This document shows, piece by piece, positions 14,915 to 64,000 of a stretch of DNA of 64,000 nucleotides. The first letter of the stretch is position 1. Each line of letters opens with the position of its first letter. The stretch comes from Selaginella moellendorffii. Its lineage: Eukaryota; Plantae; Lycopodiophyta. Below the pieces are notes generated by a model, which searched no databases, was not told the origin of the DNA, and saw only the letters and a program-made list of their open reading frames with translations. Made by a program: the position numbers and the translations under genes. The stretch lies in assembly GCF_000143415.4 (NCBI RefSeq), contig NW_003314360.1, forward strand, positions 594,486 through 658,485, in the 5' to 3' direction.

Positions 14915-14963
14915 TTTAGGGTTTAGGGTTTAGGTTTAGGATTTAGGCGCATTTAGGCATTTA
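14915..14963 (+). repeat. Interstitial telomeric tract plus degenerate TTTAGGCGC units (LINE-A tail)
   Basis: TTTAGGGTTTAGGGTTTAGGTTTAGGATTTAGGCGCATTTAGGCATTTA. Confidence 0.92.
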
Positions 14964-15007
14964 TGAACCTGCTGCAATCCGGCGAGATCGCTAAACATGT
15001 ATGTACA

Positions 15008-18700: not shown

Positions 18701-18842
18701 AGCAGCAGTGGGCCTATGGTCTCCTAGTGCTTCTCAAAGAAAATGGGCAAGAGGCCATCGATACCTGGCTGCTTGTCGTTGTTGAGCTTCCTAAGTGCTT
18801 CCCGAAGCTCCTCCAGTGTGAAGTCTGTCTTCAGTGAGTCGT

Positions 18843-21872: not shown

Positions 21873-22076
21873 CAATCCGGTGAGATCGCTGAACATGTAT
21901 GTACATTCCCCATGTCCCCATGGGACTAATACAAAAACTGGGCGTGCCGCCCTCTCAATGAGCTACTCTACATGATCCTCATATGTCGCAGCTGGACCTA
22001 GTCCTAGAGTAGAAGTGGATGTGGTCGTCTCAAGCAAATCATGTCGATGTCCAAGTCTTCTACACAAGCTGACCTT
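21873..22076 (-). mobile_element. LINE-A 3' UTR fragment (inverted copy of 22791-22993)
   Basis: Reverse-complement match to 22791-22993 and direct match to ~55023-55226. Confidence 0.9.
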
Positions 22077-26300: not shown

Positions 26301-29300
26301 ACCAATTAGCTTGGTAGAACTGGGGCGGCAGGCCATCTTCCCCTGGGGACTTGTCCTCTGGCAGTTTGTCGAGAGCAGCCTTGAGCTCATCAAGCATGAA
26401 CAGGAGAAGAAGCAGGCCGGCCACGTCTGCGTTAATCTGGCATGGGACATGCTGAAGGACTTCCTCTGATATCCTTTGGCACTCTGGGGTCCAAGGTTGC
26501 TCGGTGAACAGCTCCGAGTAGAATCGGGCCGCCATGATATGCAGCTGTGGTAGATCCGTGTGGAGTGTCCTGGCTTCGTCCTTAAGGCCAAACACCGGCG
26601 GTGAAGCGAACTTGGTGGTGATGGCGTTGAAGAACTCCCGGTTCAGCTTGAGTTCGTTATTGATCCAAGTCCCTTTTCTTACAAACGCTTCCATCTTCTC
26701 CTCCTCAAGCTTGTCTAGCTCAGCTTTGAGAAGCTCCTTTCGTCCAAGCCACGCGTCTTCAGGATGGAGCCGAGTCAGTCGGCACACTGCCATAAGGTTT
26801 TCCCGCAAGGCCTGAACTCGCCTGAACGCCTTTCTGCGTTTAGCCTGCAGAGAGCACCGAAGCTGGTCTGAAACCTCCTTCATGAAGTCAGCCAGCCGCC
26901 ACTGCCGGGACTCCCATAACTCGGCAAGCTTTGTTGTTCCATCTGGTCCAGAAAAAACCTTGCCTGGGATCGCTGGTTGCCTTTGAACTCCTGCTTCTCG
27001 CTGCAGCCGAATCTCAAGAAAGACGGGTCGATGATCCGAGAAGTCATCATAATCCGAAGACATGCACAGGCGTCCCCCCAGGAGAACCAGAGACAGGTCA
27101 ATGTAGATCTGGTCAAGTCGTCGTTGAATTCCTCGGAGACAAGCTTCCTGGAACGAGAAGCGGGGGTCATGAGGAAGAACCGAGTCCAGGTCCCACGTGT
27201 CAAAGACTCCGAGCTTAACAATGAGGCAATCCCATGCTGTCCGCTTCGCAGCAGTGTGATGGTCTCCATCCAACCCCCCGATTTGTCGTCGTCTGATTCC
27301 ACAAAGTTGAAGTCACCGAGAAGAATTCATCCGTCGAAGCAGTCCGGTAAAGTAGTGGCCAGGGTCTGCCAGAATTGCACTTGCTCGGCCGTCCTTGTGG
27401 GAGCGTAGATATTCAGCACTCCAAAGACCTTGTTGACGATGCAGAACTCCAGCAGCAAAGCTCGCGAAGGCACGACCACACGCGGATTCTGAACTACTGT
27501 GGCATATTGTCTGCAGGCTATGGTGAGTGTCCCACCTGACCTGCCCTCCACTGCATTCCACCAATGGCTTCCTTTGCAAAACTTACAACAAACATCAGTT
27601 CCATCCAGGTAGTGCTCCTGGATACACCAGATATCCACAACCAGGCCTGCGCTACCAAGTTGGCGGATGTGTGTTTGTAGAAGACCTTTTTTAGCTCGCA
27701 TGTGGCCGTGGGAAGGTCCTCGAAGCCCACGGACATTCCAGGTAGCTATCCTAAGCGTCATCATGACGCTCAGGGGCAAGAAAAACTTCCCCGACTGCAG
27801 CCCAGACGAACGGTTTGTAGAGCCTAAACCGTGAGTCCGGACTGGAGATTTCAACTTCCACAAGTCGCACTTCTGGAACCCGCCGAGCCTGCTTGATGGC
27901 AAACGTGTAGTCTCGCTTATCCCAGCCAAAGTGCAGCTGCAGAAAGTCCTCGATCTGGTCCTCGAGCACATCATACGTCTTGGGAATAAACTGAGGAAAC
28001 CACTTCTCCCCATGAGGTGCTTCTCTGGCTATCACGACCTGCCTTCCTGCGACACCTATCTTCATCTTGATAACATCTGGCGGTGGGGGAGGGGCATTGC
28101 GGATCACCGTCGGCCATGCCCTACACTCCCGTTGTGATCGCTGTGCTGGACCTCTCGCCTCTAGCCGGACAGGGGACGACCGAGTTGCCTCAGGGGAGTT
28201 ATGTTCAGCTGGTTGCGGAGAGCGGTGGCGTTTTCGGGTTGTAGGAGCTCGACGCTCTTGCATGGAGTCCGATGGTCGTAGGCTCGAAGACGAGTCAGGC
28301 CTCTTACGCTCGGGGTGGATCTCACGGAGACTCGGAAGGCGCTGAGATGACCTCTCTTCAGCTACCCGCTCCTCTCGTGGCTGGCACTCCCGCTGAGAAC
28401 TTCGGGACTTCTCTTCACTGAGTGGACTGTAATACCTGTAGGATCGTGAGTGCTGTTCGGGGACAGGAGGCCGCTGCACTCGATCCGGATGCTGCTCTTC
28501 TGCGTCTTGAGATCGCACCTTCGCCCGTTCTGAATCGAGGCCTTTACCAGGCGGTGATCTCCTGGTCCTGGGGTGTCGAGCAGGTTGCCAGTCTTGCTCC
28601 TGCTGTCGGGACAATGAACAATCATCGCGCTGCACCCCTGGGTGAGCCGCTCTGTAGGTCGGAGGCTGACGCTTGATGCTCAGGCACTCCTGCATGCGGT
28701 GCCCAACCACATGACAGTACCTACAAACCTGGCCTGCATGGCTGCTCTCTAGCCGCATTGTATGTCCTTCGATGGTAACTTGAAGGGGAATGTGTGTGCC
28801 TTCCTCAACCCGCACAGAGAAGTGGACATGGCCCTCCCTGGCAGTATGTCCCTGGATGTCGACAAGCTCACCGAACACCAAGGAAAGCTTACGAATGACC
28901 GGTTCGCAGAAGTACTCGGAAGGCATGTACAGGTGCACGGTGAACATGGTGCGCAACAGCAGGTCTCAGTTGCGCGACGTGAAGTTCGGCTGCCACTTAT
29001 ATATCCAGCATCGCCTGGAGCCAACCCGGATCTTGCACTTGCCAATGAGCGACTGAACCACTTGGGAATCGTTCAGCCTACCTCGTAACAGCCACAGCCC
29101 ATGTTTGGAGCCCTGCTGGATTGATACTTTAAAAATCACGCACTGACGTTTCTTCGGTAGATTAGTCTTCGCTTTAAACACAGAAACTATTCAAGGAATA
29201 AAAGATTTGTGGCACCAGTACCACGCGCTTGAAAAATGGAAGCTTGATCAATAAGAAATATTTCACAGCCTCCATTTTCCATTTTAGGGTTTTGCCGCCG

Positions 29301-39138: not shown

Positions 39139-42100
39139 TCAGTTGAAACTACACGTGTAGGTTGAATTGAGTTCTAAATAGTGGCTCTGGCAAAGCCATG
39201 CACCTGCACCTGTATGCCATTGCAGACCACAGTACTTGCGCATCATACTCTCTATCTCCAGGTTATCTCTTGCATTGCATTGCTGCCGCACCACTTCAAA
39301 CACTTGTTCAATATCTCCTTTTGTCGGGTTCAGCTTCTTCCAGGTTTCTATATCCAAAGTCTCCCTACCCATGTTACTCCTGAGAAAGTTCAGCATCTCT
39401 TGTGTGGGAACATCTACAAGACCGTTGACAAATGAATCCACATGCAATAGTTTTGCTGCAACGTTGATCCCCATGAAGAGCACTATGAGTCCAGGGATGA
39501 GCATCGGAGCCCAGTTTTTCAGCCAGTCTTTTGGCACCTTCACTGTCATACCTTCTGTGTTGTTTACTGGGTGACTCCCCTCAGCATACTCGCAATGGTA
39601 CCGGACTCTCACCTTATGGCGTAACTCTACGTACTTCATGAACTTGTTATCCTCACTTACCAGATATGGATAGCGTGGACATTCTACTCTGAGGGAGTGC
39701 AACATTTTGGAGCTGTGTGCCAACACTTGTCTTCCCATGTTCTCTATCTTATCCAGTGTTGCTTTGATAGACTCCAAGCTTGTTTCCATGCGGTCCAATC
39801 GCTGTTGGATGTAAATGAGCACTTTTTTTAAATCCTCATTCTCAATGTCCCTTGGTACTTCTAGAATGTGATTATCCAGCGGGGGAGTGTCGTACACCAC
39901 CTTCACAAACCTTTCATAATCCTGACAGACTTTAATGAGATCAATAGCTCTCTTCTGGATGTGTTCTCTCTGCTCACTTGGTAGCAGAAGCTTACTCAGC
40001 TCATCATCTTCATTGCGGGTCCAAGTGTGGGAGTAATTCAGGCCTTTCTCCTCTGCTTCTTTTTGAATTTGTGAAAGCGGGACAGCCACTTCAGGTGAGT
40101 TCAAGTGTTGAATTCTTTGAATTTCTGGTTCACTATGTGGTTGGTGCATTCTCCTCTCAACATATCTAGTCTTCAAAACTTTCTCTTCACCAATTTCCAG
40201 CTCACCAAAGCAAACATCTAAAACACAATTCTTGATCTTCATCATCAGCTCCTCAGCCTTCATACTACCATCCTGAGGTGCCAAAAGCATGATTCCACCC
40301 ATTGTCTGTCTGTCCATGAATCTGTATCACCTCCTATCCTCACATATACCCCAAGCCTATCTTCATTGAACGATACCCAGCCACTTCCAACATCAAAACT
40401 TGGATTCTTACATTCTTTATGAAGTTTGGCTTGAATCATTGCAAAGATACCTGTCACACAACATTCATCTGTTAGTTGAAATACAATTTTAATCCTAAAT
40501 TACCTGATGGAAAGAGTTTAAACGTGACATCCTTGCATTCCAATCTCCTGCCCCAGTACTTGTACTTCTCCCCTTGTTTTCTGTCAAATGGGGCGTATGA
40601 CAGCTGGATGCCTGAAAGTGCTGGTAAAGCAACTTCTTTAGGTAGAGGTTTCCATGTCCCAGTCCAGCCATCGTCTATGGGTATCAGCACACCCATCTCA
40701 TACAGGCACTGAAAAATATATTCGACTTTGGCTTGTTCTCCTTGACAATGTTTGAATAGTTTATCTGCAACTGCATGTATGTCTTGTACCATCTGTTGTT
40801 GGCTGTTTGATGAGATATTTATCTTCTGGGGATCAATAAACAGGCTGATCACATCTCGAATAAACCACTCCACATCTAAGATGGCATACTTTGAAATGGA
40901 ATCAAAATAAACCACCTCTCCCAAGTCATGCAGGAACAAGAACACGAATTTGATCATGTTCTGCTTCTGAGCCTCATCCAAACTTGTTTTGATCTGTTTT
41001 TGATATTTCACCAGCAGTTGTTTGCCAATATCTTGCACTTCCACAATCTGCATTTTATTCTTCTTCAGTTGTATGCACATTTCTTTGGCATCTTCACACA
41101 AGCCAGGGACTCTGAGTTGTTGTGAAAGTAATATTTGTAAAGACTTTCTTAATTTGCTTTTCAAAACCTGTAAAGTCCTTGCCTTTATTGCTTTCACCTT
41201 CAAGATGTTTTCATCAATGTCCAAAATCCCCCAGTACTGCCCAATTATGCAAACCACCTCATCCACAAGTGTATCAAAGGTGACTTTTTCACTGAAGAGG
41301 TTGAGTGCAATAAACACTTTAGGCTTCCGTTTGGATGATGACGGCTTGTGGGAAGGAATAAACCTCAACCAATACACCAGCACAGTAGTGAAGTTTTTGC
41401 GGTTGACACTGTTGTCCACTCTCAATACTACCAAGAACATGCTCTTGTCGAACCCCCTCAGGAAAGAGTGGTGGAATGCATGAAACTCATACTGGCCAGC
41501 CATATCACAAATCAGCAGCTTCTGTTCAGTGTTGTTGAAGGTGAAGGAGAGGGGTTGCAACTCAATTCCAGATGTTGAAGGGTGTCGTTGGAGGCAAGCT
41601 GGGAGTGGCAAATATTTTTTGCGACTGATGTTTGTTTTGATGGTGGTCTTCCCAGCCTGAGTTGGACCACACAAGAACAGTTTTGCCATATAAGCCTCCT
41701 TGTCTGAGGCTCTAGCAGCTCGAAATATGGAATTCCGCTTCAACAGTTCACTGCATTTTGCGTCCAGGGCTTCTGATCCCTTTGTCACGTAGAGTTCTTC
41801 CAGATGGCTTTGGTAATTCCTATCTAGTGCTTCCAGCATCTGCTTCTGCATCCACATGTCCAAGGTTCCCCCGACTTCCAGGCTTTGAAGATTGCAATCT
41901 GGGTTTCCAAGAATCAAGTCACAGACCATATCCAGATTCTGTGGCGTCACCCATATGTTGAGCTTGTGTATCTTGCTTGCCAGCATTCCCTGGAATAGAT
42001 CTTCATGCTCAAATGTTCTACAGTCCAGTCGTACCAAGCTTGAGTGTCTCAGATGGGCCCCAAGCCTCGCTTGAGCATCTGGCGTCAGTCTGTCCTCTAT

Positions 42101-43605
42101 AACTAGCTCTTGAAGTGTGCGCGTCTCGCTCAGACCATCAATAAATACTTGCGGAATGTTTGTAGCCTCGAGTCTGTATGTAAAACCTAAACTTAAGCGT
42201 GTCAGCTTGTATTGTGGATTTTCAACCAGTGCTGTTCCCGCGATTGCGTAGTATTTCTCTGCAGAATCCTCCCGCCTTGGCATCCCTATTGATAATGTCA
42301 AGTCTTGAATTTTGCTGCTAGGCAGGGCCTTCATGAGGCACTCCACTCCCTTGTAACCGATGTCGTTCCAAGTGATGCACAATCTGTGCAAAGAGCAGCT
42401 ACCGCTCTCCAAAGCACCACCCAAACTCGTTGCACCTTCTTCTTCGATCCCATTAAGCTCCAGGCGCAACACACTCAGGTGAGGGAGATGGCCCCCTTGA
42501 AGAGCCTCACATAAAAGCTTGAAATTCTTGTCACCTATATGGTCATATTGTAGGTGCAGCTCTTCCAGGCTCTGCAATTTGGAACTTGCTGCTGCCCGTG
42601 CCAGAACCTCTGCTCCTCTGTCATCAAACCCTATGTCCACCAGCTCCAAGCTCCTCAGTCTAGCACTGCTGCCCGGACTAAGGTGTTTGAGCAGACCATC
42701 CAACCCTTCGTTTCCTAATCTGGTTTTGTCAGAAATCCACAGCCTTTCCAGCACACACTTGGGAGACGCCAGAGCCTTGCTTAGAGCCTCCATGGCATTC
42801 TCGCCCAATTCTCCAGCGGAGTATAGCCCTATGCCAGCAGTCGCAAGGAATAATGGGCATATTGCGTCCATCAATTTGTTGTCATAACCCAAATCTATGT
42901 GCCAGAATACCAACCGATCCAGCGGGCATGGCAGGGTTGAGATGGAGGAGCAGAGCTCTTGAAAGCTGGATAGCGGCAGCTTCACCAGGTCATTGCCCCT
43001 GTTTAAATGACCGTCACGCGATAGTGCTCAAAAATTCACTCACTTACCCTTCAATCCTAAGCCGTTTCAAAGCGGTGCTGTTGTTGCTGCTGCTCTGCAG
43101 CAAGACTGAGAACCTCATCTGAGGGGCCGAGAAAATCTCCATGGAAATCGTCAATGCCCTCCTTCAGCGCCCGCATCTCATCAATAGGGAAACCCACACT
43201 CTTCGCTACAGCTGCTATGGTAAGCTGATAGTCAAGACAATCCCCATCCTCTCCCAGAAACACAGCTGCAAACTCATTTTTCGGATTGAAATGCCTTGAC
43301 TCGTCGTCAGCAAAGACATAACGGAGCAATGCGCCCACATGGATGAGGATGGTCAGCAGCGATAAGCTGGAGAATTTGGCTTTCAACTGCAGCACCAATT
43401 CACTCACTCGCTCTGTTGATACTCTCCCTTCACTAAGAAGCTCACCCCACTCAACCTTGTGCAGCCCATCCAGCAGCACCCGCATCCCAGGAAGAGAAAC
43501 CATCAAGTTCCCTTGACTCTCTGCCAGAAATCTCTCAAACTCCTCAATTCCATAGCATTGCCTCCAGACAAGTCTATCCCGAGCCATGGACGCTAGGGCA
43601 CACAC
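39139..43605 (-). pseudogene. LRR-Roc-COR (Roco, TORNADO1-like) gene, apparently frameshifted
   Basis: Ribonuclease-inhibitor-type LRRs. P-loop KLFLCGPTQAGKTT, ICDMAGQYEF, and COR-like LHDLGEVVYF. Introns at 40451-40503 and ~42999-43047. Frame change near 40317 before the coiled-coil and hydrophobic C-terminus. Confidence 0.82.
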
Positions 43606-47930: not shown

Positions 47931-48061
47931 ATGCCTCAAATATATCTCAAGAGCAAGAGACGTTGGTTAGAAGGCGGCTCAACCACAACATCGAGCAGAG
48001 AAGCTGCAGGACTGCATATTATCATAACAGGATTCTTTTTTTTTCCCTGGATGAAGCTACC

Positions 48062-51000
48062 CTAGAGCGCTGATTCGTATGTGATTGCAGCTCCTCCGGT
48101 TGACGTTCGTTTGAGTACCGCTGCTGCACCTTCCCATACTTCCTGTGCTGCCGGACATTCCCATAAGATGTGTCGCTGAGTTTCTGTGGCGCCACAGGTC
48201 TTGCAGGCTGTGTTCGGAAGATGTATGGCGACCAGAGAGGGAAGACGTTCTTGTTGGGCCAGCCACATGAAGTAGCGGTTCTTAGCTGACCAGCGCCCCT
48301 TCCAGATCTTGTTGATGCAGTGTGAGTGGTTCCTGGAACAGATCTGTTGGGCCTTTGCTTTCCGGATGAGGGAGGATCCAGTCGGCACCCTGATCAGTTT
48401 GCGGCCTAGCTTGGTCTCGTACTGGAAGAAGTCCTTGCACGTGGTTCCCCTCCAATGCCACTCTGCGGGATCCCACTTGAGTTCGTCCAAGGTTTGTTGG
48501 TGGAACCAGTAGAGGCGAGCGTATTGGTTTTCTGGGATCAAAGGATCAATGTTGGCAGTTTTTTTCTCCATTTGAATCACTCTGATCGGTTTAGCTCTGC
48601 TCATGTCAGGGAGGTCCTCGTACTCGGGGATAACGATGGGGTACAAGCGTCCGGTCTGTCCTGCCTCGAAGACTAGTCTGTAAGCCACAAATTTTTCCTT
48701 TCCAATTTGCCAGCTTACCTCGCCTATCCGTCCAACACCGCCTTGGATTTTGCTAAGTTCCCTTGCCAAGGTTCTCGCCTATGGTACCAGCTCCTACTTG
48801 GTCTCAGCTACTCACTGCACGAGCAACGGAGTGTTAGCCACCATCCACGGATTCCCAAATCACTCCCAATCCCCCTCCCCGGGTTAGACTGGACTTAAGG
48901 TTCGGCTACACTCCCCGCAAGCACAAGCAGCCAAGCACACCAAGCTTCCAGGTTCCTAACATCCTTTGGTACCACAAGACTTGATCATGGGACCCTCTAA
49001 ATCCCAAGTCTTGAGTGCAACACTTGCTTCGGGACGCCGGGGCGAAACACCGTGGCTTAGCGGCCCGGTATGGGTACCTCTCGCCCCCCACTTCCATCCC
49101 GAAGGAAGGCCCAAGCCCCTAGGCAGGGCGAGGACCAATGAGCCGCATGGTACTCAAGTGGGGCACCACTCCACTTGAGCCGGGAGCACCGCAATCGGTT
49201 TCCCTTTCGAGAGTGGGAGCTGCTCTTGTGCACTTCCTTGGATGGCCCCTCCGGCACCAGCCAAGTCCATGCTCACTCCCACCCAAGGCCCCTTAGTCCC
49301 AGTCCCAACCTCAAGTCGGTTTGGAAGCCCAACTGGAGAGTCCCTTCAAAATTGGTTCCTGGACCTCACTATCCCTACTATACTTTTGGAACCCCCTGCA
49401 GCCCCCCCCCCCTGGGGGACGCACGCTTTGGGCTTTCACCCCTTGACCCGTATTAGTATTTGGACTTAGTCTCTGGCTCGATCTCGGATCCGATTTCGGA
49501 TCCGACTTCGGATTCGGTCTCGGACTCGATCGCGGACTCGATCTCGGACCCGATCTCGGGCCCGACCTCGGACTCGACTTCGGACTCGGTCTCGGACCCG
49601 ATTTCGGATCTCGGACTCCGTCTCGAACTCGGTCTCGAACTCGGACTCGAACTCGGTCCCCGAGTCGGTCTTGGACTCGATTCCGGACTCTATCTCGAAC
49701 TCGGTCCTAGAGTCGGTCTTGGACTCGATCTTTGACTTGGTCCCATCCGATGAACTCTTTGTCATTTTGGTCATGCTTTCGGGGTTCCCTTAGCCTACGA
49801 CACCTCGGCGAGTTGGTTCCTTACATAGTCCCGATGCCATGTTGGGGAGGGTGCATACGATCGATTCATCCACCTTCCACCAACGATGGTGCTGATCTTC
49901 TTGCAGGTTTAGTTGTTCAAGGCATGCGTGTTTGGCTGCTAAAAAGGCTGTCTGGAATTTACGCATCCTGTGTTCTGAGATGGTTAATCCGTAGAAAGCA
50001 CTGATTCGGTCGCAGTTGTGGGCCGTCTGGTTGGGCTGGATCATGGTGTCTGCCTCTGCGAAGGTTCTCATCCCTGCTCTGTGCAGGTCTCTGCATGTCT
50101 GGTCCAGGCCGCGATCCTCTGAAGCTCCGAGCGTTTTACCCTTGACAGCGAAGAGTTTGCTCAGGAAAATTGGCTGCCGGTCCAGTTGTTCTTTGGTACG
50201 AGGTGGTTTACGTTCCAGCTTGCACTTGAATTGCCTCCAGAGCTTGAACAGCTTTCCTGAAAATGTGTGAGCCTTTGTCATTTTGAGTTTGGTGTCTGAG
50301 AAGAGCCATTGTTCATCTGACGCCCAGTTTTGTCTGGTGTGCTCATTCCTGTCCGGGAGGACTTTCAAAAATTGTGCTCGCAGCAGTATTCTCCATGGTT
50401 GGTGGCCAGGCATGAGCATCCTTGTGAAAATCTTGAAGAGAAGTGCCTTGCATTGTTCTTCGATGTCAATAATATTGAGGCCCCCTTCGTGCTTCGGAAG
50501 TGTTACTGACCGCCAGTTGACCTTTGCTCCACCACGCGACACGCAGGAGGAGCCTTTCCAGACATAGGTTCGAATGAGTTGGTTCATTTCCTGGATCGTT
50601 CGCCTGTCCATGTTCCAGCATGCTGCCAGGAACCAGATCGCTCCAAGCAGGATGCTGTTAGCCACCACGCAGCGTGCTGAGAACGATAGTTTTCTGCTCG
50701 CCCAAAACTTGAGTTGATCCCTTAGTTTTGTTACAGCTTTTTGGTTCTGGGGTTCTGGATCATATTGGCGTCCCACTTGAAATCCTAGGTAGCGGGTGGT
50801 CTCCTCTGTGTCCAGCCATTTGAAACCCAGCTCCGTGCCCCATGTTGGAGGTCTGCCGGGGGGGAGCCATAGTCCTACCGATTTATGCCAGTTTATTTTT
50901 GATCCCATGGCCTCATTGAAAAAGTCCAGGTCCCTTTTGACATTTGAGAGGTTCTCCGGTGATCCCTCCACGATCAGGCTTGTGTCATCTGCAAAGGCTG

Positions 51001-51133
51001 AGGATAGGAGGTCCTCCTTTGAGGCTTCGGTCATGTCCTGAAGTGCGGCGCCACAGCCTGGAAGGGGCATGCCTTTTGGACCCTGTGGTCGGGCGAGGTA
51101 GTAGGCCAGAGCATCCGCAATAAACAGGAACAG
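48062..51133 (-). mobile_element. L1-type LINE family C, ORF2 RT/C-terminal fragment, interrupted by a solo LTR and cut at the 5' side by telomeric repeats
   Basis: LFLFIADALAYYL, SAFADD, RYLGFQVG, LPKHEGGLNI, CKTCGATETQRHILWEC. The sequence switches to GGTTTAGGG at ~51133. Confidence 0.92.
48679..49825 (-). mobile_element. Solo LTR (1147 bp) with 5-bp TSD
   Basis: TGTAAG...CTTACA termini. TAGTC at 48674-48678 and 49826-49830. Shares a core and hexamer array with the LTR at 4544-6073. Confidence 0.95.
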
Positions 51134-51227
51134 GTTTAGGGTTTAGGGTTTAGGGTTTACCGGTTTAGGGTTTAGGGTTTAGGGTTTAGGGGTTTAGGGT
51201 TTAGGGTTTAGGGGTTTAGGGTTTAGG
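51133..51227 (+). repeat. Interstitial telomeric tract (former chromosome end / PLE-A tail)
   Basis: About 13 TTTAGGG units with an ACCGG interruption at 51159-51163. Confidence 0.97.
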
Positions 51228-51384: not shown

Positions 51385-51437
51385 GACAACCCGAGACCGG
51401 TTTCGTCCTTTTTGGGACTCATCAGCCGGGTGTAGTC
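51385..51437 (-). ncRNA. Minimal type I hammerhead ribozyme (PLE-A)
   Basis: GACTACACCCGG-CTGATGA-GTCC CAAAAA GGAC-GAA-ACCGGTC^TCGGGTTGTC. Intact core with palindromic stem III ACCGGT. Predicted cleavage between 51395 and 51394. Confidence 0.95.
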
Positions 51438-52294: not shown

Positions 52295-54451
52295 TTATTC
52301 ATATGGTGGGAGTCTCGCTGAAACCAAGTGGGAAGCAAGGTTTGGGGACCGTGTCCAGCATGTGATCACTCTGGGGAGTGAGTCTGATGGAACTTCAGAA
52401 ATCACCTGTTTAGGGTTTAGGGTGTTCCCCACATCAAGTGCCGCACTATGGAGAGTATAAGGCAGCTTGAAAATGAGGGGGGCCTGTAGACTATTGCTAC
52501 TGGATTTGCGTGATGGAGAGTAGAGCACATTATCTCGGTCCGTATAATGGATTGTCCGGAAAGCTTCAATAAGGAAGGCTCTTGGGTATCCACGTGCACG
52601 GAGACGAGTATAGAAAAGCTTGCGAATTGCACAGAAGCTCTCAGGGTTACTCTCTCGTAGGAGGTAATGCCGAAGTTCAGCACGAATAAAGGCAATCTTT
52701 TGGTGTCGAGGATGCGTTGAGTTCCATGGAAGATATTGGTATGCATTTAGTGGCTTTTGAAAGGTGGTGGAGTCTAGGCACCTGCATTTCTCAAAGCGTG
52801 GGCCTTTGAAAAAATGGATGTCTAGAATATCCATAGATTCAAATGAGATCACTGAGGTGATCTTTATAGAATTGCAGAGGCTTCCATAGCTAGCCAACCA
52901 GCATTCCAAGCTCTCTTTTGATCCATCCCAAATTCCGACACCATCGTCAATATATCTCTTAAGATATATTGGCCATTTAGAAGAGGTGGCCTTAAACTCG
53001 TCCTCGAGGGAACAAAGAAAAAGGCAAGCATACACCACAGCAAAGTTTGACCCCATAGCAGTGCCTCGGATTTGAAGGAAATAACTCCCATCGAACTCAA
53101 CATAATTGTGTTCAAGGATGAGTCCTGCAGCAGCCATGATAAAGCGTGCTTGCATTGAATCTCCAAAATTTCTATATACAAATTTATGGAGGCAATAGAG
53201 CCCTTCACGTGTGGGAATGCTCGGGTAGAGCGACTCCACATCAAAAGTGAAGAGGAGGCAGTCTTTTGGGAGCTGTTGTTTATGAAGATCATGAAGGAGG
53301 GTGTGGGAGTCCATAAGAAAGGTTTCCTGTTGGAGGAGAATGCCAAAAAGTTGGCGGTGGAGCCATTTTGCAAGTGGCTCCCAAATGTAGCCAACATAGC
53401 TAGCAATTGGTCTCCCACGAATTGGCTGCTTGTGTATTTTTGGAAGAAAATACAACAAACAAGCTTTACGTGGAGGTGAGGGCAAAGTGATGAGGTACTT
53501 GGCTGTGTTCTTGTCCAGCCATGAGCAAGATTTATACTTCAGGAGAAGTTCGAGGAGGCGCTCATGCATGGGTTGATGTGGAATCGACTCAACTCTCTTG
53601 TAGACAAGAGGATCATTGAGTTGGCGCATAGCCTCTTGAATGTACCACGTGCGGTCCAGAACAACTACGCCAAGGTTTTTGTCGGCTGGTTTAATCACAA
53701 TACTATGATCGTGTCGCAGCGCAAGGACTGCATCACGTCTCCATCCTCTTAGAAAAGATCGAGGTCTTTTACAACAGGAAAGACGTTGGAGAAGGTGCTC
53801 TCGAATGCGGGCAACTCGTGACTCCATGTGCCAGGAAGCAGGGGGAGGATCAAAGTTTGGGTTGGGAACCCGAAACTCTGGTATAAGACTGTTGCTGTCC
53901 TTAAACGAATGACGAAGACGGACTGAGCGTTGAAAGTCATCTAAGCATTCCATAATCTTTTTGGCCGTGAGAGGCACTGGATTAGGAATGAATGAGAGCC
54001 CAAGAGCAAGGAGGCGCTTTTCAGCGGCACTCAACATGCGAGAAGACAAATTGTGAACAGCACCAATCTCCACTCTATTTTCTAGCTGGGAAACTTTTTG
54101 ATTGCCGGCAAAATGAAGTAAAGCTTCATGCGGGGCAATCAAAGGTAGCCAGAAACTTTTGCCTTGCCTTTTCTGTCCACAGGCACTGCCGTAACTGGAG
54201 AGTGCGGGCGTTGCTGTGGAGGCGAGTTTCTTCCCAAGCCATAGCGTTGGGTTCGTTCGTGGAGTGGGGTGTTGTTGTGGTGCTGTGAGGGCTGCATCTC
54301 TTGTCCTCTGGGAGGTGAAGGTGGTTTCTGGTTCTGAGTTGGCTGGCGTTGTTGGGCTGCTGGAGGAGGTCGTGGTGTAGTCTGGCGCCCTCGGCCGCTT
54401 GGCCAGTTCGGTTGGGACCGTGGGGGTCGACCGTTTCCTCGAAACTGGCAT
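52295..54451 (-). CDS. Penelope-like reverse transcriptase, 718 aa, no GIY-YIG endonuclease
   Basis: PLE motifs HNLS..LSAAEKRLLALGLSFIP, IVIKPADKNLGVVV, YFLPKIHK..GRPI, FDVESLYPSIP, QIRGTAMGS, RYIDD, FQKPLN..YLPWNSTHP, ARGYP. The ORF ends right after the thumb region. Confidence 0.96.
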   Translation of the reverse strand: MPVSRKRSTPTVPTELAKRPRAPDYTTTSSSSPTTPANSEPETTFTSQRTRDAALTAPQQHPTPRTNPTLWLGKKLASTATPALSSYGSACGQKRQGKSFWLPLIAPHEALLHFAGNQKVSQLENRVEIGAVHNLSSRMLSAAEKRLLALGLSFIPNPVPLTAKKIMECLDDFQRSVRLRHSFKDSNSLIPEFRVPNPNFDPPPASWHMESRVARIREHLLQRLSCCKRPRSFLRGWRRDAVLALRHDHSIVIKPADKNLGVVVLDRTWYIQEAMRQLNDPLVYKRVESIPHQPMHERLLELLLKYKSCSWLDKNTAKYLITLPSPPRKACLLYFLPKIHKQPIRGRPIASYVGYIWEPLAKWLHRQLFGILLQQETFLMDSHTLLHDLHKQQLPKDCLLFTFDVESLYPSIPTREGLYCLHKFVYRNFGDSMQARFIMAAAGLILEHNYVEFDGSYFLQIRGTAMGSNFAVVYACLFLCSLEDEFKATSSKWPIYLKRYIDDGVGIWDGSKESLECWLASYGSLCNSIKITSVISFESMDILDIHFFKGPRFEKCRCLDSTTFQKPLNAYQYLPWNSTHPRHQKIAFIRAELRHYLLRESNPESFCAIRKLFYTRLRARGYPRAFLIEAFRTIHYTDRDNVLYSPSRKSSSNSLQAPLIFKLPYTLHSAALDVGNTLNPKQVISEVPSDSLPRVITCWTRSPNLASHLVSARLPPYE

Positions 54452-54634: not shown

Positions 54635-55353
54635 CGGTTTAGGGTTTAGGGGTTTAGGGTTTAGGGTTTAACGGTTTAGGGTTTAGGGTTTAGGTTTTAG
54701 GCGCGTTTAGGCGTTTAGGGTCAAAGGCACCCCGGGTTTAGGGTTTAGGGTTGAGGGTTTTTGGGGAGGCGCGTTTAGGCGTTTAGGGTCAAAGGCACCC
54801 CGCGTTTAGGGTTTAGGGTTTAGGTTTAGGGTTTAGGGTTTAGGGTTTATAGGGTTTAGGGTTTAGGATTTAGGCGCGTTTAGGCGTTTAGGGTCAAAGA
54901 CACCCCGTGGTGTTGCAATCCGGCGAGATTGCGGCACCACTTTGTGCAGTCCGGTTTAGGGTTTATGGTTTAGGGTTTAGGCGCGTTTAGGCGTTCAGGG
55001 TCAAAGACAGCCCACGGTGCTGCAATCCGGCGAGATCGCTGAACGTGTATGTACATTCCCCATGTCCCAATGGGACTAATACAAAAAATGGGCGTGCCGC
55101 CCTCTCAATGAGCTACTCTACGTGATCCTCATATGCCGCAGCTAGACCTAGTCCTGGAGTAGAAGTGGACGTGGTCGTCTCGAGCGAATCATGTCGATGT
55201 CCAAGTCTCCCCCACGAGCTGACCTTAGAACAGAGTCTGGGGGGCGCCATTGCCAGCGAATCTCGCCACCTCCCCGGTTTAGGGTTTAGGGTTTAGGGTT
55301 TAGGGTTTAGGGTTTAGGGTTCCGGTTTAGGGTTTAGGGTTTAGGGTTTAGGG
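54635..55353 (-). repeat. Ladder of telomeric tracts alternating with short 5'-truncated retroelement 3' ends
   Basis: Cassette fragments at ~54696-54733, ~54767-54803, ~54869-54952 (PLE-B type) and ~54976-55274 (LINE-A type), each separated by TTTAGGG runs. Confidence 0.93.
54976..55274 (-). mobile_element. LINE-A 3' end (~300 bp) embedded in the telomeric array
   Basis: Reverse complement of ~22743-23040 (last ORF2 codons GGGEIRWQWRPPD plus 3' UTR). Confidence 0.93.
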
Positions 55354-55538
55354 TTTAGGCGCGTTTAGGCGTTTAGGGTCAAAGACACCCCGCGGTGTTG
55401 CAATCCGGCGAGATCGCGGCACCACTTTGTGCAATCCACATTCTCCGTGTGCCGTTGTCGAGACGGCATGATCGAGAGCAAGTAGAGGAGGCAAGGGAAT
55501 GAATTTTCATTCATTCATGAGCGAGGGAGAGGACAAGA

Positions 55539-55591
55539 GACAACCCGAGACCGGTTTCGTCCTTTTTGGGACTCATCAGCCGGGTGTAGTC
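55539..55591 (-). ncRNA. Minimal type I hammerhead ribozyme (PLE-B1)
   Basis: 53 nt identical to 51385-51437. Confidence 0.95.
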
Positions 55592-56695: not shown

Positions 56696-57405
56696 CATAT
56701 GCTTCCGTCTCTTGCAAAGTGTGGTAGAAGATGTGGCTGAGCTCGCAACGCGAGTTTAGCCCTGACCAGGAACGAACTGGGGTTCGGGAGGCATCTCCAG
56801 CACGTGATCACTCAGGGGAGTGTGTCTGCGGGAGCTTCATCCATCACCTGTTTAGGGTTTAGGATGTCCCCCAAGCCTAGCTGCATGCTGTGAAGCGTGT
56901 AGGGCAGCTTTAAGGCGAGGGGGGCCCGTCGACAAGCGTCACTAGAGCGGCGCAAGCGTGCAAGGAGAGCTTGATGTCACTGGTCAGAGGAGATGCTGGA
57001 GAGGCAGTGTTGGAGGAAGGAGATCAGGTATCCCTGGGCACAGAGGCGGTGGTAGAACCGCGTGCGCATGGCATGGAATCCATCGGCCGTGCTCTCGCGG
57101 AGGAGGTATCTCCGGAGTTCGCTGTGGATAAATGCCACTTTCTGGTGCCATGGGTGAACTGACGTCCAGGGGAGGTACTGGTAGGCATTGAGCGGCTTCT
57201 GGAACGTGGACAAGTCAAGGCAGCCTGTCTCTTCAAAGCGAGGGCCTTTGAAGAAGTGGATATCGAGGATATCCAACTCCTCGAGCGAGATCACCGAGGT
57301 GATCTTGATCGAGGGACGTAGCGTGCCGTATCCTCGGAGCCATCGTTCGAGGCCTGCTCGTGTACCTGTCCCTCCGTCATCTGTGTACCTCCGTCGATAG
57401 AAGGG
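56696..57405 (-). pseudogene. PLE RT remnant (motif C to C-terminus), degenerate
   Basis: RRYTDDG..SIKITSVISLEELDILDIHFFKGPRFE..FQKPLNAYQYLPW aligns with PLE-A. Frameshifted, with the upstream RT motifs missing. Confidence 0.92.
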
Positions 57406-57479
57406 CAATTTGTTGGTTGTGTCGAGGCACTTGTCGAGAGTGTTGAGTGTGGTGTCATGGACACGCAGAGCAGAGCCAA

Positions 57480-60400
57480 GTGCAAAGGTGACAGTGGCTG
57501 CTGCGCTGGGCCAGGTCCTGGAGAGCATTAAGGCGAGAGGGCTCGCTGCTCTGTTCCAGTGGCAAGGGCTGGCCTGGGTGGCGATTGCAAGGGATCTGGC
57601 ACCAGAGGTGGTGAGAGAGCCCGTGCCATCGGCATAGTGTCTGGCTCTGCAGTAGCAGGGCCAGTGCTGGCATGCAAAGCTGGTTTTGTGCTTCCATGGC
57701 AGATTAGGTCGATTTTTGGCAGTGTTGTGGCGATGTCTAGGCAGCTTGGGTGCTCGGAGTGGCAGGGAGCATTCCCATTGGCATCTTTGGTGATCCTTTG
57801 GTGGTGCCAAGGCAACATACCAGAGGGGGACAAAAAGCCGTTGTGAGGGATTTGCTGTACCAGACCCAAGTCAGGGGGGCTGGGCTGCGCTAGACGTCGG
57901 AAAGACTGCTGAGTGGAGATATCAAGCTAGCTCCCAAACTCTTAGTGGCCGTAAGCAGCTCCAGGTGGGGATTATTTGTGGCGCTCTGGCGGCAGAACAC
58001 AGCGCGCAGAGGCCAGTGCAAATGCCCGGCCTGGAGACATGCTGTGCCAAACCTGTGCGAGGGGAGTGAGGGGCATCGTGCCAGAGATCACAGCAGCTTT
58101 GTGGTGATGTCTGGGTGGCACAGGCGCTCTCAACAGCAGGGAGCAATCCCCCTAGCATTTTTGGAAATCCCTTGGTGGTGCCGAAGCAGCCGCCAAGGGG
58201 ACCAAAAAGCCTTTGTGGGGCATTTGCTATGCCGGACCTGAGTCAGGGGAGCTGGGCCGCACCAGACGCCAGAAAAGCTGTTGTGTGGAGATGCAGAGCT
58301 AGCTTCGAGACTCTTAGTGGCTCCAGGCAGGGATTTCTGTGGCGTCCTGGCGGTGAGGTGCAGCACAGGGGGGCCAACGTAAATGCCCGGCCTGGAGCTG
58401 CTGGGCGGCACTGGGCGGTACCAGGCGGTACTGGGCAGTGCCACGTGTCTCTGGAAGTACTGCGTGTCGCTGGGCAGTGCCGCGCGTCACTGTGCAGTAC
58501 CGCGTGTTGCTGGGCAGTGCCGTGCGTCATTGTGCAGTACCGCGCGTCGCTGGCAGTACAGCGCGTTGCTGGGCGGTGCTGACACGTGAGCTGGGCACTC
58601 GTGAGCAGCACTGGGCGGCATGGGGCGGCACTAAGCACGCAGCGGCTCTGGGCAGCACGTGGCGGCCCTGAGCAGCATGTGGTGGTGCCTGGCGCAGCTG
58701 GGCGCTGCTAGGCAGCGCTGGTGGTGCTGCTGGGCGGCAGCTGGCTGGGACACGATACTGACGGGTTGGTCTGCGACGAGCCACAGCGTTGGCGCTTTGG
58801 GCAGCGAGTGCTGGCCTAAGTGCTGGCCGTGGCGGTCGCTGGAGGCCGGCCGTGGCATGGCTAGCTGGCTGGCTGGCGCAGCAGCCGCGGCAGCTGTTGG
58901 TGTTAGCAAGCTGCGGGCTGTTGCGGTGGCTGGTGCTGCCTGCATCGGTGGCTGTTGCTGCTGGAGCAGCTGGCCGTGGCGTGCTCAGGACACAGCGGCC
59001 ATGCTCCCATAGCTTCCTCTACCATTGCCAAAAACTAAGTGCTAGGACTTAGAAATTTCTGGCAACTCGAAGGCTGAGCGCTTGAGCCGTTGGATCTGTG
59101 CGATCCGACGGTGGAAGAGAGAAGAGGCCTTTGCAGTGGCTGTTGCTGTTGCAAAGGCTTCTCCCATGGCAGATTTTGGTGAGGCACAGCATTTCTGTGG
59201 TGATCTCTGGGTGGTGTGGGCGCTCTGTGTGGCAGGGAGCAGCTCCCTTGGCATTTTTGATGATCTCTTGGTGGTGCCAAGGCACTGTACCAAAAGGGGC
59301 AAAAAGCCTTTGTGGGGAATTTGCTGTGCCAGACACGATTCAGGGGAGCTGGGCCGCAGGAAACACCAAAGAGATTGCTGTGTCGAGAAGCCAAGCTAGT
59401 TCCCGGACTCTTAGTGGTAGTGAGCAGCTCCAGGCAGGGATTTTTTGTGGCGCTGTGGCAGCGAGGTGCGGCACACAGGGGCCAACGCAAATGCCTGGCT
59501 TGGAGACTTGCTGTGCCAGACCCTGGCGAGGGGAGAGAGGGACAGCATGGCTGGTTTCTCTGGATCCAGAGCCATGCTTGGAGTTGTCCTGGCTTGATGT
59601 TGTGGCGTGGTCAAGACAGAATGCCCTGCCGTGGCTGCTCCTTGCATCTTTCTCCTCCATAGCCCAGAAAAAATCTAAGTGCTGGGACTTAGAATTTTTT
59701 ACGATTGAGGCTTGGACCACGTGGACCGTTGGATCGGGAGATCTGACGGTGGAGAGGATGCTGGAGGAGCAGAGGCGGGCATTTGCAATTGCGGTTGCAA
59801 TTGTGTCTCCCACGGCAGATTCTGGTGGATCGCAGCAGCTTTGTGGTGATGTCTAGGTGGTGTGGGTGCTCTCAATCGGCAGGGAGCAATCCCCTTAGCA
59901 TTTTTGGAGATCCCTTGGTGGTGCTGAGGCAGCAACCAAGGGGGGCCAAAAACCCTTTGTGGGGCATTTGCTGTGCCGGACCTGAGTCAAGGGAGCTGGG
60001 CCGCACTAGACGCCACAAGAGCTGTTGTGTGGAGAGGCCGAGCTAGCTCCCAGACTCTTAGTGGTGGTTAGCAGCTCCAGGCAGGGATTTCTGTGGCGTC
60101 CTGGCAGTGAGGTGCAGCGCGCACAGGGACCTACGGAAATGCCCGGCCTGGGGACTTGCTGTGCCAGACCCGTGTGCAGGGAGTGAGGGGCATCATGGCT
60201 GGCTTCTCCTGTCTCAGAGTCATGTATAGAGTTGTCTTGGTTTGCTGTTGGCACCAGGCAGTGCAGGGAGGCGCTAGGCAGGGCACAGCGGCTCCGGGCG
60301 GCGCGTGGCGGCCCTGAACGGCGTGCGGCGGTGCTTAGCGCTGCTGGGCAGCGCGTAGCGTCATGCGGAGGTGCCTGGCGCAGTGGGGCACTGCTGGGCA

Positions 60401-61970
60401 ACGCTGGTGGTGCTGCTGAGCAGCAGCTGGCCGGGACGCGGTGCTAGCGGGCTGGGCCACAACGAGCCACAGAGTTGGCGCCTTGGGCGGCGAGTGCTGG
60501 CCCAAGTGCTCGCTGTGGTGGTCGCTGGAGGCCGGCCGTGGCACGGCTGGCTGGCCGGCTGGAGCAGCAGCCGCGGCAGCTGCTGGTGTTGGCAGGCTGC
60601 GGGCTGTTGCAGCGGCTGGCGCTGCCTGCGTCGGCGGCTGCTGCTGCTGTTGGAGCAGCTGGCTGTGGTGACTTGGGCCGTGGCGTGCTCAAGACGTAGC
60701 TGCCATGCTCACGTAGCTTCCTCTCCATTGCCAAAAACCAAGTGCTAGGACTTAGAAATTTTTGGCAGCTCAAAGGCTGAGCGTTTGAGCCGTTAGATCT
60801 GTATGATCCAACGGTGGAGGAGAGAAGAGAAGGGAGCGTGAGTGGCCCTTTGCAATTGCTGTTGCAAAGGCTTCTCCCATGGCAGATTTTGGTGAAGCAC
60901 AGCGTTTTTATGGTGATCTCTGGGCGGGGTGGGCGCTCTGTGTGGCAGGGAGCAGCTCCATTGGCATTTTTGATGATCTCTTGGTGGTGCCAAGGCACTG
61001 GACCAAAAGGGGCAAAAAGCCTTTGTGGGGAGTTTGCTGTGCCAGACCCAATTCAGGGGAGCTGGGCCGCGGGAAACACCAAAAAGATTGCTGTGTTGAG
61101 AATCCAAGCTAGCTCCCGGACTCTTAGTGGCAGTGAGCGGCTCCGGGCAGGGATTTTTTGTGGCGCTGTGGCAGCGGAGTGCGGCGCACAGGGGCCAACG
61201 CAAATGCCTGGCTTGGAGACTTGCTGTGCCAGACCCTGGCGAGGGGAGAGAGGGGCATCGTGGCTGGTTTCTCTGAATCCAGAATCATGCTTGGAGTTGT
61301 CTTGGCTTGCCGTTGGCTTGCTGCTGTGGCGTGCTCAAGACAGAATGCCCTGCCATGGCTGCTCCTTGCATCTTTCTCCTCCATAGCCCGGAAAAAATCT
61401 AAGCGCTGGGACTTAGAATTTTTTACGATTGAGGCTTGGACCACGTGGGCCGTTAGATCGGGAGATCTGACGGTGGAGAGGATGCTGGAGGAGCAGAGGC
61501 GGGCATTTGTAGTTGCAGTTGCAATTGTGTCTCCTACGGCAGATTCTGGTCGATCACAACAGTTCTGTGGTGATGTCTGGGTGAGGCGCGTGCTCTCAAC
61601 AGCAGGGAGCAATCCCCTTAGGTTTTTTGGAGATCCTTTGGTGGTGCCGAGGCAGCAACCAGAGGCAGCCAAAAAGCCTTTGTGGGGCACTTGCTGTGCT
61701 GGACCTGAGTCAGAGGAGCTGGGCCACACGAGACGCCAGAGAAACTGTTGTGTGGAGATGCCGAGCTAGCTCCCAGACTCTTAGTGGCGGTTAGCAGCTC
61801 CAGGCAGGGATTTCTGTGGCGTCCTGGCGGTGAGGTGCAGCGCGCAGGGGCCAACACAAATGCCCGGCCTGGAGACTTGCTGTGCCAGACCTGTGCGCAG
61901 GGAGTGAGGGGCATCGTGGCTGGCTTCTCCTGTCCCAGAGCCGTGTATGGACTTGTCTTGGCCTGCCATT
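57480..61970. repeat. GC-rich nested repeat block (about six copies of a ~300-bp module; ~1.7-kb higher-order duplication)
   Basis: GCTAGCTCCC.GACTCTTAGTGG..AGCAGCTCCAGG-like module near 57925, 58297, 59395, 60041, 61107 and 61764. ~58690-60240 resembles ~60395-61960. Confidence 0.88.
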
Positions 61971-62133
61971 GGCGAAGAATTCCGACTTCAGTAGATTGTT
62001 GTCCAGATTTACTGGATTTTTCTGGAAACAATAGAAACAGTGTGAGAACTTAAGCTTACTTGGTGCGTGGGATGTGCTTTTGCAACCGAGCAAAGCTGGT
62101 GAGGCCCGCTCGGATGCTTTTGAACCGCAGAGA

Positions 62134-63637
62134 GTTTAGGATTTAGGCGCGTTTAGGCGTTTAGGGTCAAAGACACCCCGCGGTGTTGCAATCCGGCGAG
62201 ATTGCGGCACCACTTTGTGCAATCCACATTCTCCGTGTGCCGTTGTCGAGACGGCATGATCGAGAGCAAGTAGAGGAGGCAAGGGAATGAATTTTCATTC
62301 ATTCGTGAGCGAGGGAGAGGACAAGAGACAACCCGAGACCGGTTTCGTCCTTTTTGGGACTCATCAGCCGGGTGTAGTCGTCTAGTGTCTACCCTAACCC
62401 TAGCTCGGTGCCGACTCTACTTATATTTTGGCTCTGTCATGTGGCGCAAGTCCGTGTGGCGGCCATGCAAAGTGGCGTGGCAGCGTTGGCTCGCGAGGGT
62501 GCGAACGTAGCACAGCTGGTGTTGGTTACTCCACAGCAGTGGTAGTCGCGGAGAATGACTTCGGCGGATCGCCGAAGACAGTAAGCGTTCAGCCGGCGGG
62601 TGACGTACCTTTGACGCAAGATAACTTGTAAACGCGGCATGATATGATGCATGCGTTACGTCCACAATGCTTGTGTCACTCGTACGTACCCGGTGACGAA
62701 AAACGTGGTTCACTTTGCAGGGAATATTCTGGGAATATTCCGTCGTTGACCGTTGACCCTGCGTTGACCGTGTGTGGACTGGGATGGTGGAGGGCCTGAG
62801 GTCACTCATACATACCCGGAGTCCAGCGGTGATGCAGGGGAGAGCCATCCCGCGAGCTGTCGGCATGTGTCGCCGATGTCGAGGGAGCGGCACCGTTTTA
62901 ACGGAATACACGCTTTTCCACGAGTCGTGTGTGGAGTTCAGAGTTGAAACTCACATATTCACGATCGGAAGGAAGAGCGGAATCCAACAGTATATGCCGT
63001 TTTGACTCGGTCAACAGGGATACAGTCGGAATATTGGGGAATATTCCGTTCTGACCGTTGACTCCGCGTTGACCTGGCGTTGACTCGAAAGGGGGTGGCC
63101 TGGAGTGACTTGGGACATACCTGAAGTCCATCGGCCAGACCCTGGGAGTCATAGGGTATGCGGTGTCGGCGCGTGTGGCGTCGACGTCGTCGCATGGCAC
63201 CATTATGAGATTCGCAAGCTTTCCAAGGTGTGGTGTCCATCGTAAGGAGATGAGACCAACGTAGTCACACTTGGAAAGGGGTGCAGAATCGAATGGTGTA
63301 GGCCTCGTTGACTCGGTCAACAATCTGACTGTCAGGGAATATTCGGGAATATTCCTGTTTGGACAGTAGACTGGGCGTTGACCGGGCGTTGACCGGTGGG
63401 GGACGACCTGGGGTGACTGGGACATACCTAGAGTCCATTGGCCAGACCCTGAAGGTCATCAGTCATGCGGAGAAGGATGCAATCATATGCTTCCGTCTCT
63501 TGCAAAGTGTGGTAGAAGATGTGGCTGAGCTCGCAACGCGAGTTTAGCCTTGACCAGGAACGAACTGGGGTTCGGGAGGCATCTCCAGCACGTGATCACT
63601 CAGGGGAGTGTGTCTGCGGGAGCTTCATCCATCACCT
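62134..63637 (-). mobile_element. Terminal 5'-truncated PLE-B copy (PLE-B2)
   Basis: Matches 55354-56849 at offset 6788 with about 7 transitions. Capped by the telomere. Confidence 0.95.
62327..62379 (-). ncRNA. Minimal type I hammerhead ribozyme (PLE-B2)
   Basis: 53 nt identical to the other two copies. Confidence 0.95.
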
Positions 63638-64000
63638 GTTTAGGGTTTAGGGTTTAGGGTTTAGGGTTTAGGGTTTAGGGTTTAGGGTTTAGGGTTTAGG
63701 GTTTAGGGTTTAGGGTTTAGGGTTTAGGGTTTAGGGTTTAGGGTTTAGGGTTTAGGGTTTAGGGTTTAGGGTTTAGGGTTTAGGGTTTAGGGTTTAGGGT
63801 TTAGGGTTTAGGGTTTAGGGTTTAGGGTTTAGGGTTTAGGGTTTAGGGTTTAGGGGTTTAGGGTTTAGGGTTTAGGGTTTAGGGTTTTAGGGTTTAGGGT
63901 TTAGGGTTTAGGGTTTAGGGTTTTAGGGTTTAGGGTTTAGGGTTTAGGGTTTAGGGTTTTAGGGTTTAGGGTTTAGGGTTTAGGGTTTAGGGTTTAGGGT
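63638..64000 (+). repeat. Telomere, plant-type (TTTAGGG)n
   Basis: About 52 near-perfect units running to the end of the window, with rare TTTTAGGG/TTTAGGGG variants. Confidence 0.98.

Follow-up and report, generated by a model that had tools for sequence, protein, structure and literature searches.

A LINE and its non-coding partner that probably target the 3' hairpin of a telomeric Penelope-like element in Selaginella moellendorffii

The locus and its telomeric context

The window, by which the whole stretch of 64,000 nucleotides analysed here is meant, ends in a true telomere. Inward of it, retro-copied units of two Penelope-like elements (PLE-A and PLE-B) and of a LINE (LINE-A) form a chain, in which the RNA-sense strand is the minus strand and CCCTAAA tracts lie between the units. 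Reading inward, the PLE-B 3' ends at 62142 and 55354 come first, then a fragment of LINE-A, termed fragment (a), with a 64-nt cassette (together 54976-55274), a truncated PLE-B unit (54869-54952), two cassette fragments (54768-54804 and 54700-54735), PLE-A and a broken LINE of an unrelated family. The terminal units are arranged head-to-tail, are 5'-truncated, are separated by telomere repeats and face the centromere with their 3' ends, right beside the true telomere. The features that define this end, and the basis on which each was assigned, are as follows.

63639-64000, plus strand: true telomere, (TTTAGGG)n up to the end of the window (repeat reading)
56752-57435, minus strand: PLE-B remnant of a reverse transcriptase (RT), corresponding to residues 484-714 of the PLE-A RT (56% identity)
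55543-55585, minus strand: type I hammerhead ribozyme of PLE-B, separated from the cassette downstream by about 125 nt (Rfam Hammerhead_1)
52295-54451, minus strand: PLE-A RT open reading frame, 718 aa, with no endonuclease domain (protein comparison)

The PLE-A reading frame is 99% identical to the protein LOC112343723 of S. moellendorffii, which gives the species. Two loci of assembly GCA_000143415.2, named L001 and L002, match the DNA of the window in blocks that are 94-99% identical. Three S. moellendorffii loci were sampled in all, namely the window, L001 and L002, the last two being taken from a draft assembly of the 2011 era.

A recurrent joint, CCCTAAACCGG, was observed between the telomere tail of one unit and the truncated 5' end of the next (55272-55280, 54950-54960, 51160-51170 and others). 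The motif ACCGG is also the sequence that directly precedes the hammerhead cleavage site (ACCGGUC).

The Penelope-like elements

Telomere-associated transposons are rare in plants, and the PLEs of S. moellendorffii are the textbook case (PMC12477314). The telomeric, endonuclease-less, hammerhead-bearing PLEs of this species have already been published (PMC8557442, PMC4209133, PMC12477314). In the summaries given in PMC8557442 and PMC12477314 of the work of Gladyshev and Arkhipova (2007), the endonuclease (EN)-deficient, telomere-associated PLEs comprise Athena, Coprina and the elements of S. moellendorffii; the hammerheads are treated in PMC4209133. PLE-A and PLE-B have the same features in the same species: an RT that lacks GIY-YIG, a hammerhead of type I close to the 3' end, a 3' end of telomere repeats in reverse complement and truncated head-to-tail chains. 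No essential difference was seen between them and the published elements.

The homologues of the PLE-A reading frame carry the PLE families PF28514 and PF26215, and the closest ones are without PF01541 (GIY-YIG). The tail of PLE-A is its own and does not include the 64-nt cassette. PLE-B, on the other hand, retains only the C-terminal third of the PLE RT, both in the window and in L002. It had been annotated as a non-autonomous Penelope element, and this holds for the copies examined, which have the RT remnant only and the Rfam Hammerhead_1. The hammerhead (RF00163), with 40.5 bits, is above the gathering score of 34 and was found at three sites in the window and at six in L001 and L002. Copies identical to the one listed above are present at 62331-62373 and, in PLE-A, at 51389-51431, all of them on the minus strand. 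The upstream part of PLE-B (57900-62140) consists of tandem repeats with an alternating spacing of about 650 and about 1066 bp that are 63-94% alike, and the same structure is present in L002.

Reads of a stranded RNA run (X24) were placed on positions 62050-63630 (1581 letters). Across the PLE-B 3' region and the cassette, all first mates lie on the plus strand, and the depth peaks over the cassette. For most stranded libraries, this orientation denotes RNA from the minus strand. Among the X24 reads over 62050-63630, no loose ends or joints at the cassette were found, and what they give is coverage only. By the mechanism published for its class, PLE-B would be copied onto chromosome ends through annealing of its C-strand repeat tail to the G-overhang.

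The 64-nt cassette

The cassette copies that the initial annotation had assigned to PLE-B and to LINE-A, each followed by CCCTAAA repeats, are all present. The two last entries of the list below had been absent from it.

55354-55417, minus strand: PLE-B 3' cassette, unoccupied, made of hairpin 1 (18 nt), the small hairpin 2 and degenerate C-strand telomere repeats (alignment, fold, nick motif)
62142-62205, minus strand: unoccupied 3' cassette, of the GCAATC variant, in the most distal PLE-B unit (cassette match, nick motif)
54976-55039, minus strand: complete cassette 3' of LINE-A fragment (a) (alignment)
22979-23040, plus strand: old, diverged cassette 3' of LINE-A fragment (b) (alignment)
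14915-14991, minus strand: degenerate cassette (14942-14991) that retains an intact hairpin 1 but has lost hairpin 2, with telomere repeats (14915-14941) (alignment)
54869-54952, minus strand: very short, 5'-truncated PLE-B unit, with 20 nt of body, the cassette (54869-54932) and flanking telomere repeats (alignment)
54700-54804, minus strand: two cassette fragments (54768-54804 and 54700-54735) with telomere repeats between them, their 5' ends lying in the loop of hairpin 2

Perfect CCCTAAA repeats (55276-55353) are found beyond the PLE-B cassette at 55354-55417. When the cassette was split into a 29-mer and a 24-mer half, the window gave 6 and 5 matches, respectively, as against 0 in shuffled sequences. 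It is, as had been proposed, a real 3'-terminal module, placed just before the C-strand telomere repeats of a telomere-attaching, RT-defective, hammerhead-bearing PLE.

It had also been proposed that the cassette folds into two tetraloop hairpins. RNAfold does predict both; the fold is, nevertheless, only slightly more stable than that of shuffled sequences (z -1.1 to -2.0). Hairpin 1 is predicted in every context and hairpin 2 in isolation only, since in the native PLE-B context a longer stem (GUGGUG with CACCGC) that encloses hairpin 1 is favoured over hairpin 2. The description of most copy variants as loop changes or G-U/A-U swaps is correct, the pair changes being one-sided only (G-U/A-U and C-G/U-G). 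The expected structural covariation was not seen: among 14 cassette copies, 9 of them distinct, 0 of the 12 pairs are altered on both sides. Variation is so low that the shuffle controls for covariation carry no information. As predicted RNA structures, the two hairpins are plausible candidates; hairpin 1 is at the least a DNA palindrome that serves as a target, as discussed further below.

In the shortest units that consist of the cassette alone (54804 and 54735 in the window, 6632 in L001), the start falls within a hairpin loop, either that of hairpin 2 or that of hairpin 1. These cases, three only, suggest that cDNA synthesis often halts at the 5' arm of the cassette hairpins.

LINE-A and its non-coding partner

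LINE-A was found in the window as fragments and as one longer copy, named E2. A related non-coding element, X', adjoins the latter.

55040-55274, minus strand: LINE-A fragment (a), made up of the 3'-terminal ~235 nt and matching the intact L002 copy at 97.8% identity
22076-23068, plus strand: LINE-A fragment (b) (22076-22978), cassette (22979-23040) and four telomere repeats (23041-23068) (alignment)
21890-22084, minus strand: LINE-A tail fragment (c) (alignment)
21873-21889, minus strand: copy of hairpin 1 between tail (c) and the 5' end of E2, being the 5' copy of a target-site duplication (alignment)
15738-21872, minus strand: LINE-A copy E2, with the first ~509 nt missing; ORF1 at 20656-21513, RT from ~18822 downwards, zf-RVT at 16252-16632
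14992-15737, minus strand: X', a non-coding relative of element X with a LINE-A-type 3' end, inserted at the 3' junction of E2

The assignment of LINE-A to the L1 type is borne out by a full-length copy in L002. This copy is 6.8 kb long, its ORF1 is open and includes a CCHC knuckle, and its ORF2 of 1506 aa has the domains Exo_endo_phos (APE; 4.6e-14), RVT_1 (4.7e-26) and zf-RVT (3.5e-08), both frames being intact. Exact-protein look-ups with the reading frames of the window and of L002 gave no match, and a homologue search with ORF2 found no close S. moellendorffii copies. Outside the species, the nearest database proteins are only 28-34% identical to it. The nearest hit, P0127 (74% identity), led to a further locus, L003; its LINE belongs to a related but different family (69% nucleotide identity), lies at an internal site and is uninformative on the specificity of LINE-A. 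That family has no cassette, and its 3' end is unreadable.

Relative to the L002 copy, the E2 segment at 18843-20509, which covers the APE domain and the N-terminus of the RT, is a 1667-bp inversion with both breakpoints exact. Twin priming was considered as its origin and rejected, as the ORF1 region beyond it is in the original orientation; the segment looks like a clean in-place inversion.

The second element of interest, X, is present in L001. It is 1.64 kb long and non-coding, its longest ORF not exceeding 107 aa, and its insertions use the LINE-A site and show the same duplication. LINE/SINE pairs are known to share 3' tails, and 'stringent' lineages of plant L1 elements have been described (PMC3472496). 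LINE-A and X are like such pairs in that they use the same target site and have only the last ~45 nt in common, which are 77-82% alike and include a shared 3' stem-loop with one compensatory pair. X is unlike a SINE in its length of 1.6 kb, and no recognisable small-RNA head was found in it. This ~45-nt end, and not the cassette, is the real shared 3' module of the system, and it is through this end that X would be mobilised in trans.

Junctions and the target-site duplication

The filled site in L002 reads as the PLE-B body ending in GTGGTGCC, hairpin 1 (10025-10041), the full-length LINE-A and hairpin 1 again at 16852, after which the cassette continues to its end and gives way to telomere repeats and then to unique DNA. 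The unoccupied cassettes at 55417 and 62205 of the window provide the empty sites for comparison. Similarly, L001 has two insertions of X in PLE-B cassettes, with the same arrangement as the L002 LINE-A and in cassettes of different variant types: both hairpin copies of one insertion read GCAATC and both of the other GCGATC. The two X copies are 99.8% alike, yet their 5' joints differ by a few bases. In the window, the 5' end of E2 stands behind a hairpin 1 (21873-21889) that itself stands behind an older LINE-A tail. Four 5' junctions (L002 LINE-A, E2 and the two X of L001) thus have a duplicated hairpin 1 of 17-19 bp. The insertions always fall between ...GTGGTGCC and GCRATC. In a small sample from three loci, 8 of the 8 LINE-A and X 3' ends abut the same nucleotide, and poly(A) was found at none of the eight. 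Between X' and E2 there is no full duplication, the two being separated by GC alone. The comparison of filled with empty sites gives the classic pattern of a target-site duplication, in which the duplication is made of target sequence. It is because the insertion duplicates hairpin 1 that the cassette next to fragment (a) is complete.

The initial annotation had read these data differently. It took the cassette for a portable 3' end that is an integral part of both LINE-A and PLE-B RNAs, was acquired by one from the other, docks on the G-overhang and is copied by a PLE RT in trans. Such a reading would agree with fragment (a), which has telomere repeats on both sides; with fragment (b), which ends in the cassette and four telomere repeats beside non-PLE DNA; and with a LINE-A that lacks poly(A). 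It had been stated, too, that the similarity stops sharply at GCGATC and that the sequences upstream are unrelated. Close similarity does end at GCRATC; a weak match persists beyond it, however, as the last 24 nt of LINE-A (55040-55063) agree with the 24 nt that precede the insertion site in PLE-B (55418-55441) at 15/24 ungapped positions (P ~1e-4 for that register by sampling). X and PLE-B agree at 11/24 over the same 24 nt. The match between LINE-A and PLE-B, which fits a shared module, could also stem from an old capture of PLE-B sequence by the LINE, or from mimicry.

The 5' junctions speak against a portable module. At three of them, the 5' end of LINE-A or X is preceded by the PLE-B body and exactly hairpin 1, with no telomere repeats, and at the fourth E2 is preceded by an older LINE-A tail and hairpin 1. 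The agreement of the G/A variant on both sides of each X insertion is left unexplained by it, and LINE-A encodes an intact APE endonuclease. Nine cassettes in three loci come after plain PLE-B sequence with no LINE, and those found 3' of LINE-A or X have the same variant combinations as the plain PLE-B ones and form no separate lineage; the covariation expected of a conserved RNA module is missing as well. The filled-site/empty-site comparison has already largely refuted the portable module, which is now very unlikely. Hairpin 1 recurs at the LINE 5' junctions, behind the PLE-B body or an older LINE-A tail, and the cassette is to be read as an insertion target.

According to the preferred reading, to which a probability of roughly 0.85 is assigned, the cassette is the 3' terminal module of PLE-B, and LINE-A and X are site-specific retrotransposons that target its hairpin 1. 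Another way to account for the shared cassette is a single chimera of a LINE tail and a PLE tail, formed once at the DNA level and spread by segmental duplication of subtelomeres. Subtelomeres do exchange sequence, and blocks of L001 and the window are 96-99% identical in a different order. Descent from one chimera is, nonetheless, scarcely credible: the LINE-A copies are 5'-truncated at different points (~235 nt, 195 nt, 903 nt, 6.3 kb and full length), differ from each other by 2-10%, and occupy cassettes of more than one variant type, while X uses the same site independently.

Nick sites and the proposed mechanism

Hairpin 1 lies within an imperfect palindrome of 30 bp. The junctions are at symmetric positions in it, with the half-site GATYGC^RRCACC on each strand. 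The window holds 7 occurrences of the 12-mer nick motif GATYGCRRCACC, where 0.07 would be expected, and all of them are in cassettes. The motif is present on both strands of three unoccupied cassettes, and beside fragment (a) only the top-strand copy is left. Judging by the symmetric junctions and these half-sites, the LINE-A endonuclease may be specific for the half-sites of the cassette.

With the cassette as target, insertion may be pictured as follows. The APE endonuclease would cut behind GATCGC in the bottom strand and behind GATTGC in the top strand, so that one specificity would account for both nicks. Needing no poly(A), reverse transcription would probably start on a read-through transcript paired with the nicked site, in the manner of other site-specific LINEs. 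The duplication would then restore a full cassette downstream of the insert, and as a result read-through RNA of LINE-A or X would end in the PLE-B docking tail. Such RNAs may occasionally be copied onto a chromosome end as passengers.

Passenger copies at chromosome ends

A second step of this kind is needed for fragments (a) and (b), as neither has a 5' copy of hairpin 1; here, the read-through RNA would have been copied onto an end. On its 5' side, fragment (a) is bordered by telomere repeats and by the ACCGG joint that the neighbouring units also show, which marks it as a passenger in a telomere-primed unit. It is probably a 5'-truncated cDNA of a read-through RNA that was added to the chromosome end as a passenger. 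The earlier proposal that LINE RNA is copied onto ends by way of the cassette is thus right in so far as fragment (a) reached a chromosome end with the cassette; the way there was hitch-hiking and not a shared module.

An interstitial island was observed at 14915-23068. After its left flank come four TTTAGGG repeats, an antisense cassette, X', E2, hairpin 1 and tail (c); at 22076-22084, these are joined head-to-head to the sense LINE-A fragment (b), which is followed by its cassette, four CCCTAAA repeats and the right flank. Its layout suggests the fusion of two broken ends, each of which had first been healed and lengthened by telomere-primed retro-copies. Twin priming was also considered for the head-to-head pair of (b) and (c) and was rejected, as the 3' end of the element is present in both arms.

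It may be asked how far LINE-A depends on its host element. In L002 (10001-12244), the ORF1 frame is open for 146 codons from the PLE-B ATG, which is equivalent to 55435-55437 of the window, through the duplicated hairpin and into LINE-A. Over this stretch the two remaining frames are interrupted by 3-4 stops; inside the element, the earliest in-frame ATG of ORF1 is codon 145. The gene model SELMODRAFT_420524 also begins at the PLE-B ATG in L002, and the LINE 5' end lies ~143 nt downstream of a hammerhead. LINE-A may, then, borrow the start codon and the upstream hammerhead from its PLE-B host.

An extended reading goes beyond site-specific insertion and makes LINE-A a hyperparasite with two modes, dependent on PLE-B for transcription, ribozyme processing of its 5' end and the start codon, and also regularly spread to chromosome ends by the PLE RT by means of the regenerated cassette. 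The open frame, the nearby hammerhead and the plus-strand first mates of X24 across the PLE-B 3' region and cassette agree with such dependence, and fragments (a) and (b) resemble terminal additions. Against it, there is a single full-length LINE-A copy, upstream ATGs lie between the ribozyme site and the PLE-B ATG, and the passenger copies may be rare accidents. This extension is considered rather unlikely. Accordingly worded, it is no more than tentatively suggested that LINE-A is an obligate hyperparasite of a telomeric PLE that lands in the hairpin of its docking tail and borrows its transcription, hammerhead and ORF1 start codon, with the PLE RT carrying the read-through RNA to the ends. 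If this were true, a single plant LINE would spread in two ways, one site-specific and dependent on its endonuclease, the other adding to telomeres and independent of an endonuclease.

Comparison with known systems

Target-specific non-LTR elements of the APE type are known from the Tx1 clade, such as Keno in U2 genes, and from the R1 clade, such as TRAS/SART in telomere repeats (PMC4640811, PMC7265360). LINE-A, as read here, is like these elements in having an ORF2 with APE and RT, in using one exact point of a multicopy target, in duplicating target sequence and in needing no poly(A). Tandem and nested re-insertions are a further likeness, and so is a target that can be another transposon; Tx1L inserts in the Tx1D transposon. 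LINE-A is unlike them in its land plant (lycophyte) host and its architecture, which with the zf-RVT is like that of plant L1 elements, the likeness to the Tx1 and R1 types being one of target use and domains. Its target is also different from theirs, being a hairpin of palindromic sequence within the tail by which a telomeric PLE docks.

R2 and R1 elements are co-transcribed with the rDNA and processed by ribozymes. By analogy, LINE-A may resemble them in relying on transcription of the host unit, in having a self-cleaving ribozyme nearby and in using a read-through RNA that pairs with the target. The ribozyme here, however, belongs to the host element, being the hammerhead of PLE-B, and the dependence is deduced only from the open upstream frame.

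No relevant description of a LINE that targets a PLE, or of a site-specific LINE in Selaginella, was found in the literature searched, the scope of which left out Repbase and two key Arkhipova papers. What appeared to be a module shared between a LINE and a PLE is, on the preferred reading, really target-site parasitism, and an attractive but wrong interpretation is thereby corrected. The system that emerges is testable: an apparently intact, site-specific, APE-bearing LINE of L1 type in a land plant, a palindromic target of 30 bp with symmetric nick sites and a non-coding partner, all nested in the RNA tail that docks a PLE on telomeres. It would provide a defined DNA substrate for studying how an endonuclease of L1 type gains sequence specificity, as well as an example from nature of a retroelement that is carried to chromosome ends by another.

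Other elements in the window

Two more LINE families of L1 type are present on the minus strand at 23438-28956 and 48056-51070. They have RVT_1 and zf-RVT and are 31-50% identical to LINE-A at the protein level; the one at 48056-51070, which is broken, forms the base of the terminal chain. A Ty3-type LTR retrotransposon with LTRs of 233 bp lies at 8043-12955, and an LRR-Roc-COR (ROCO) gene is found at 40472-42985.
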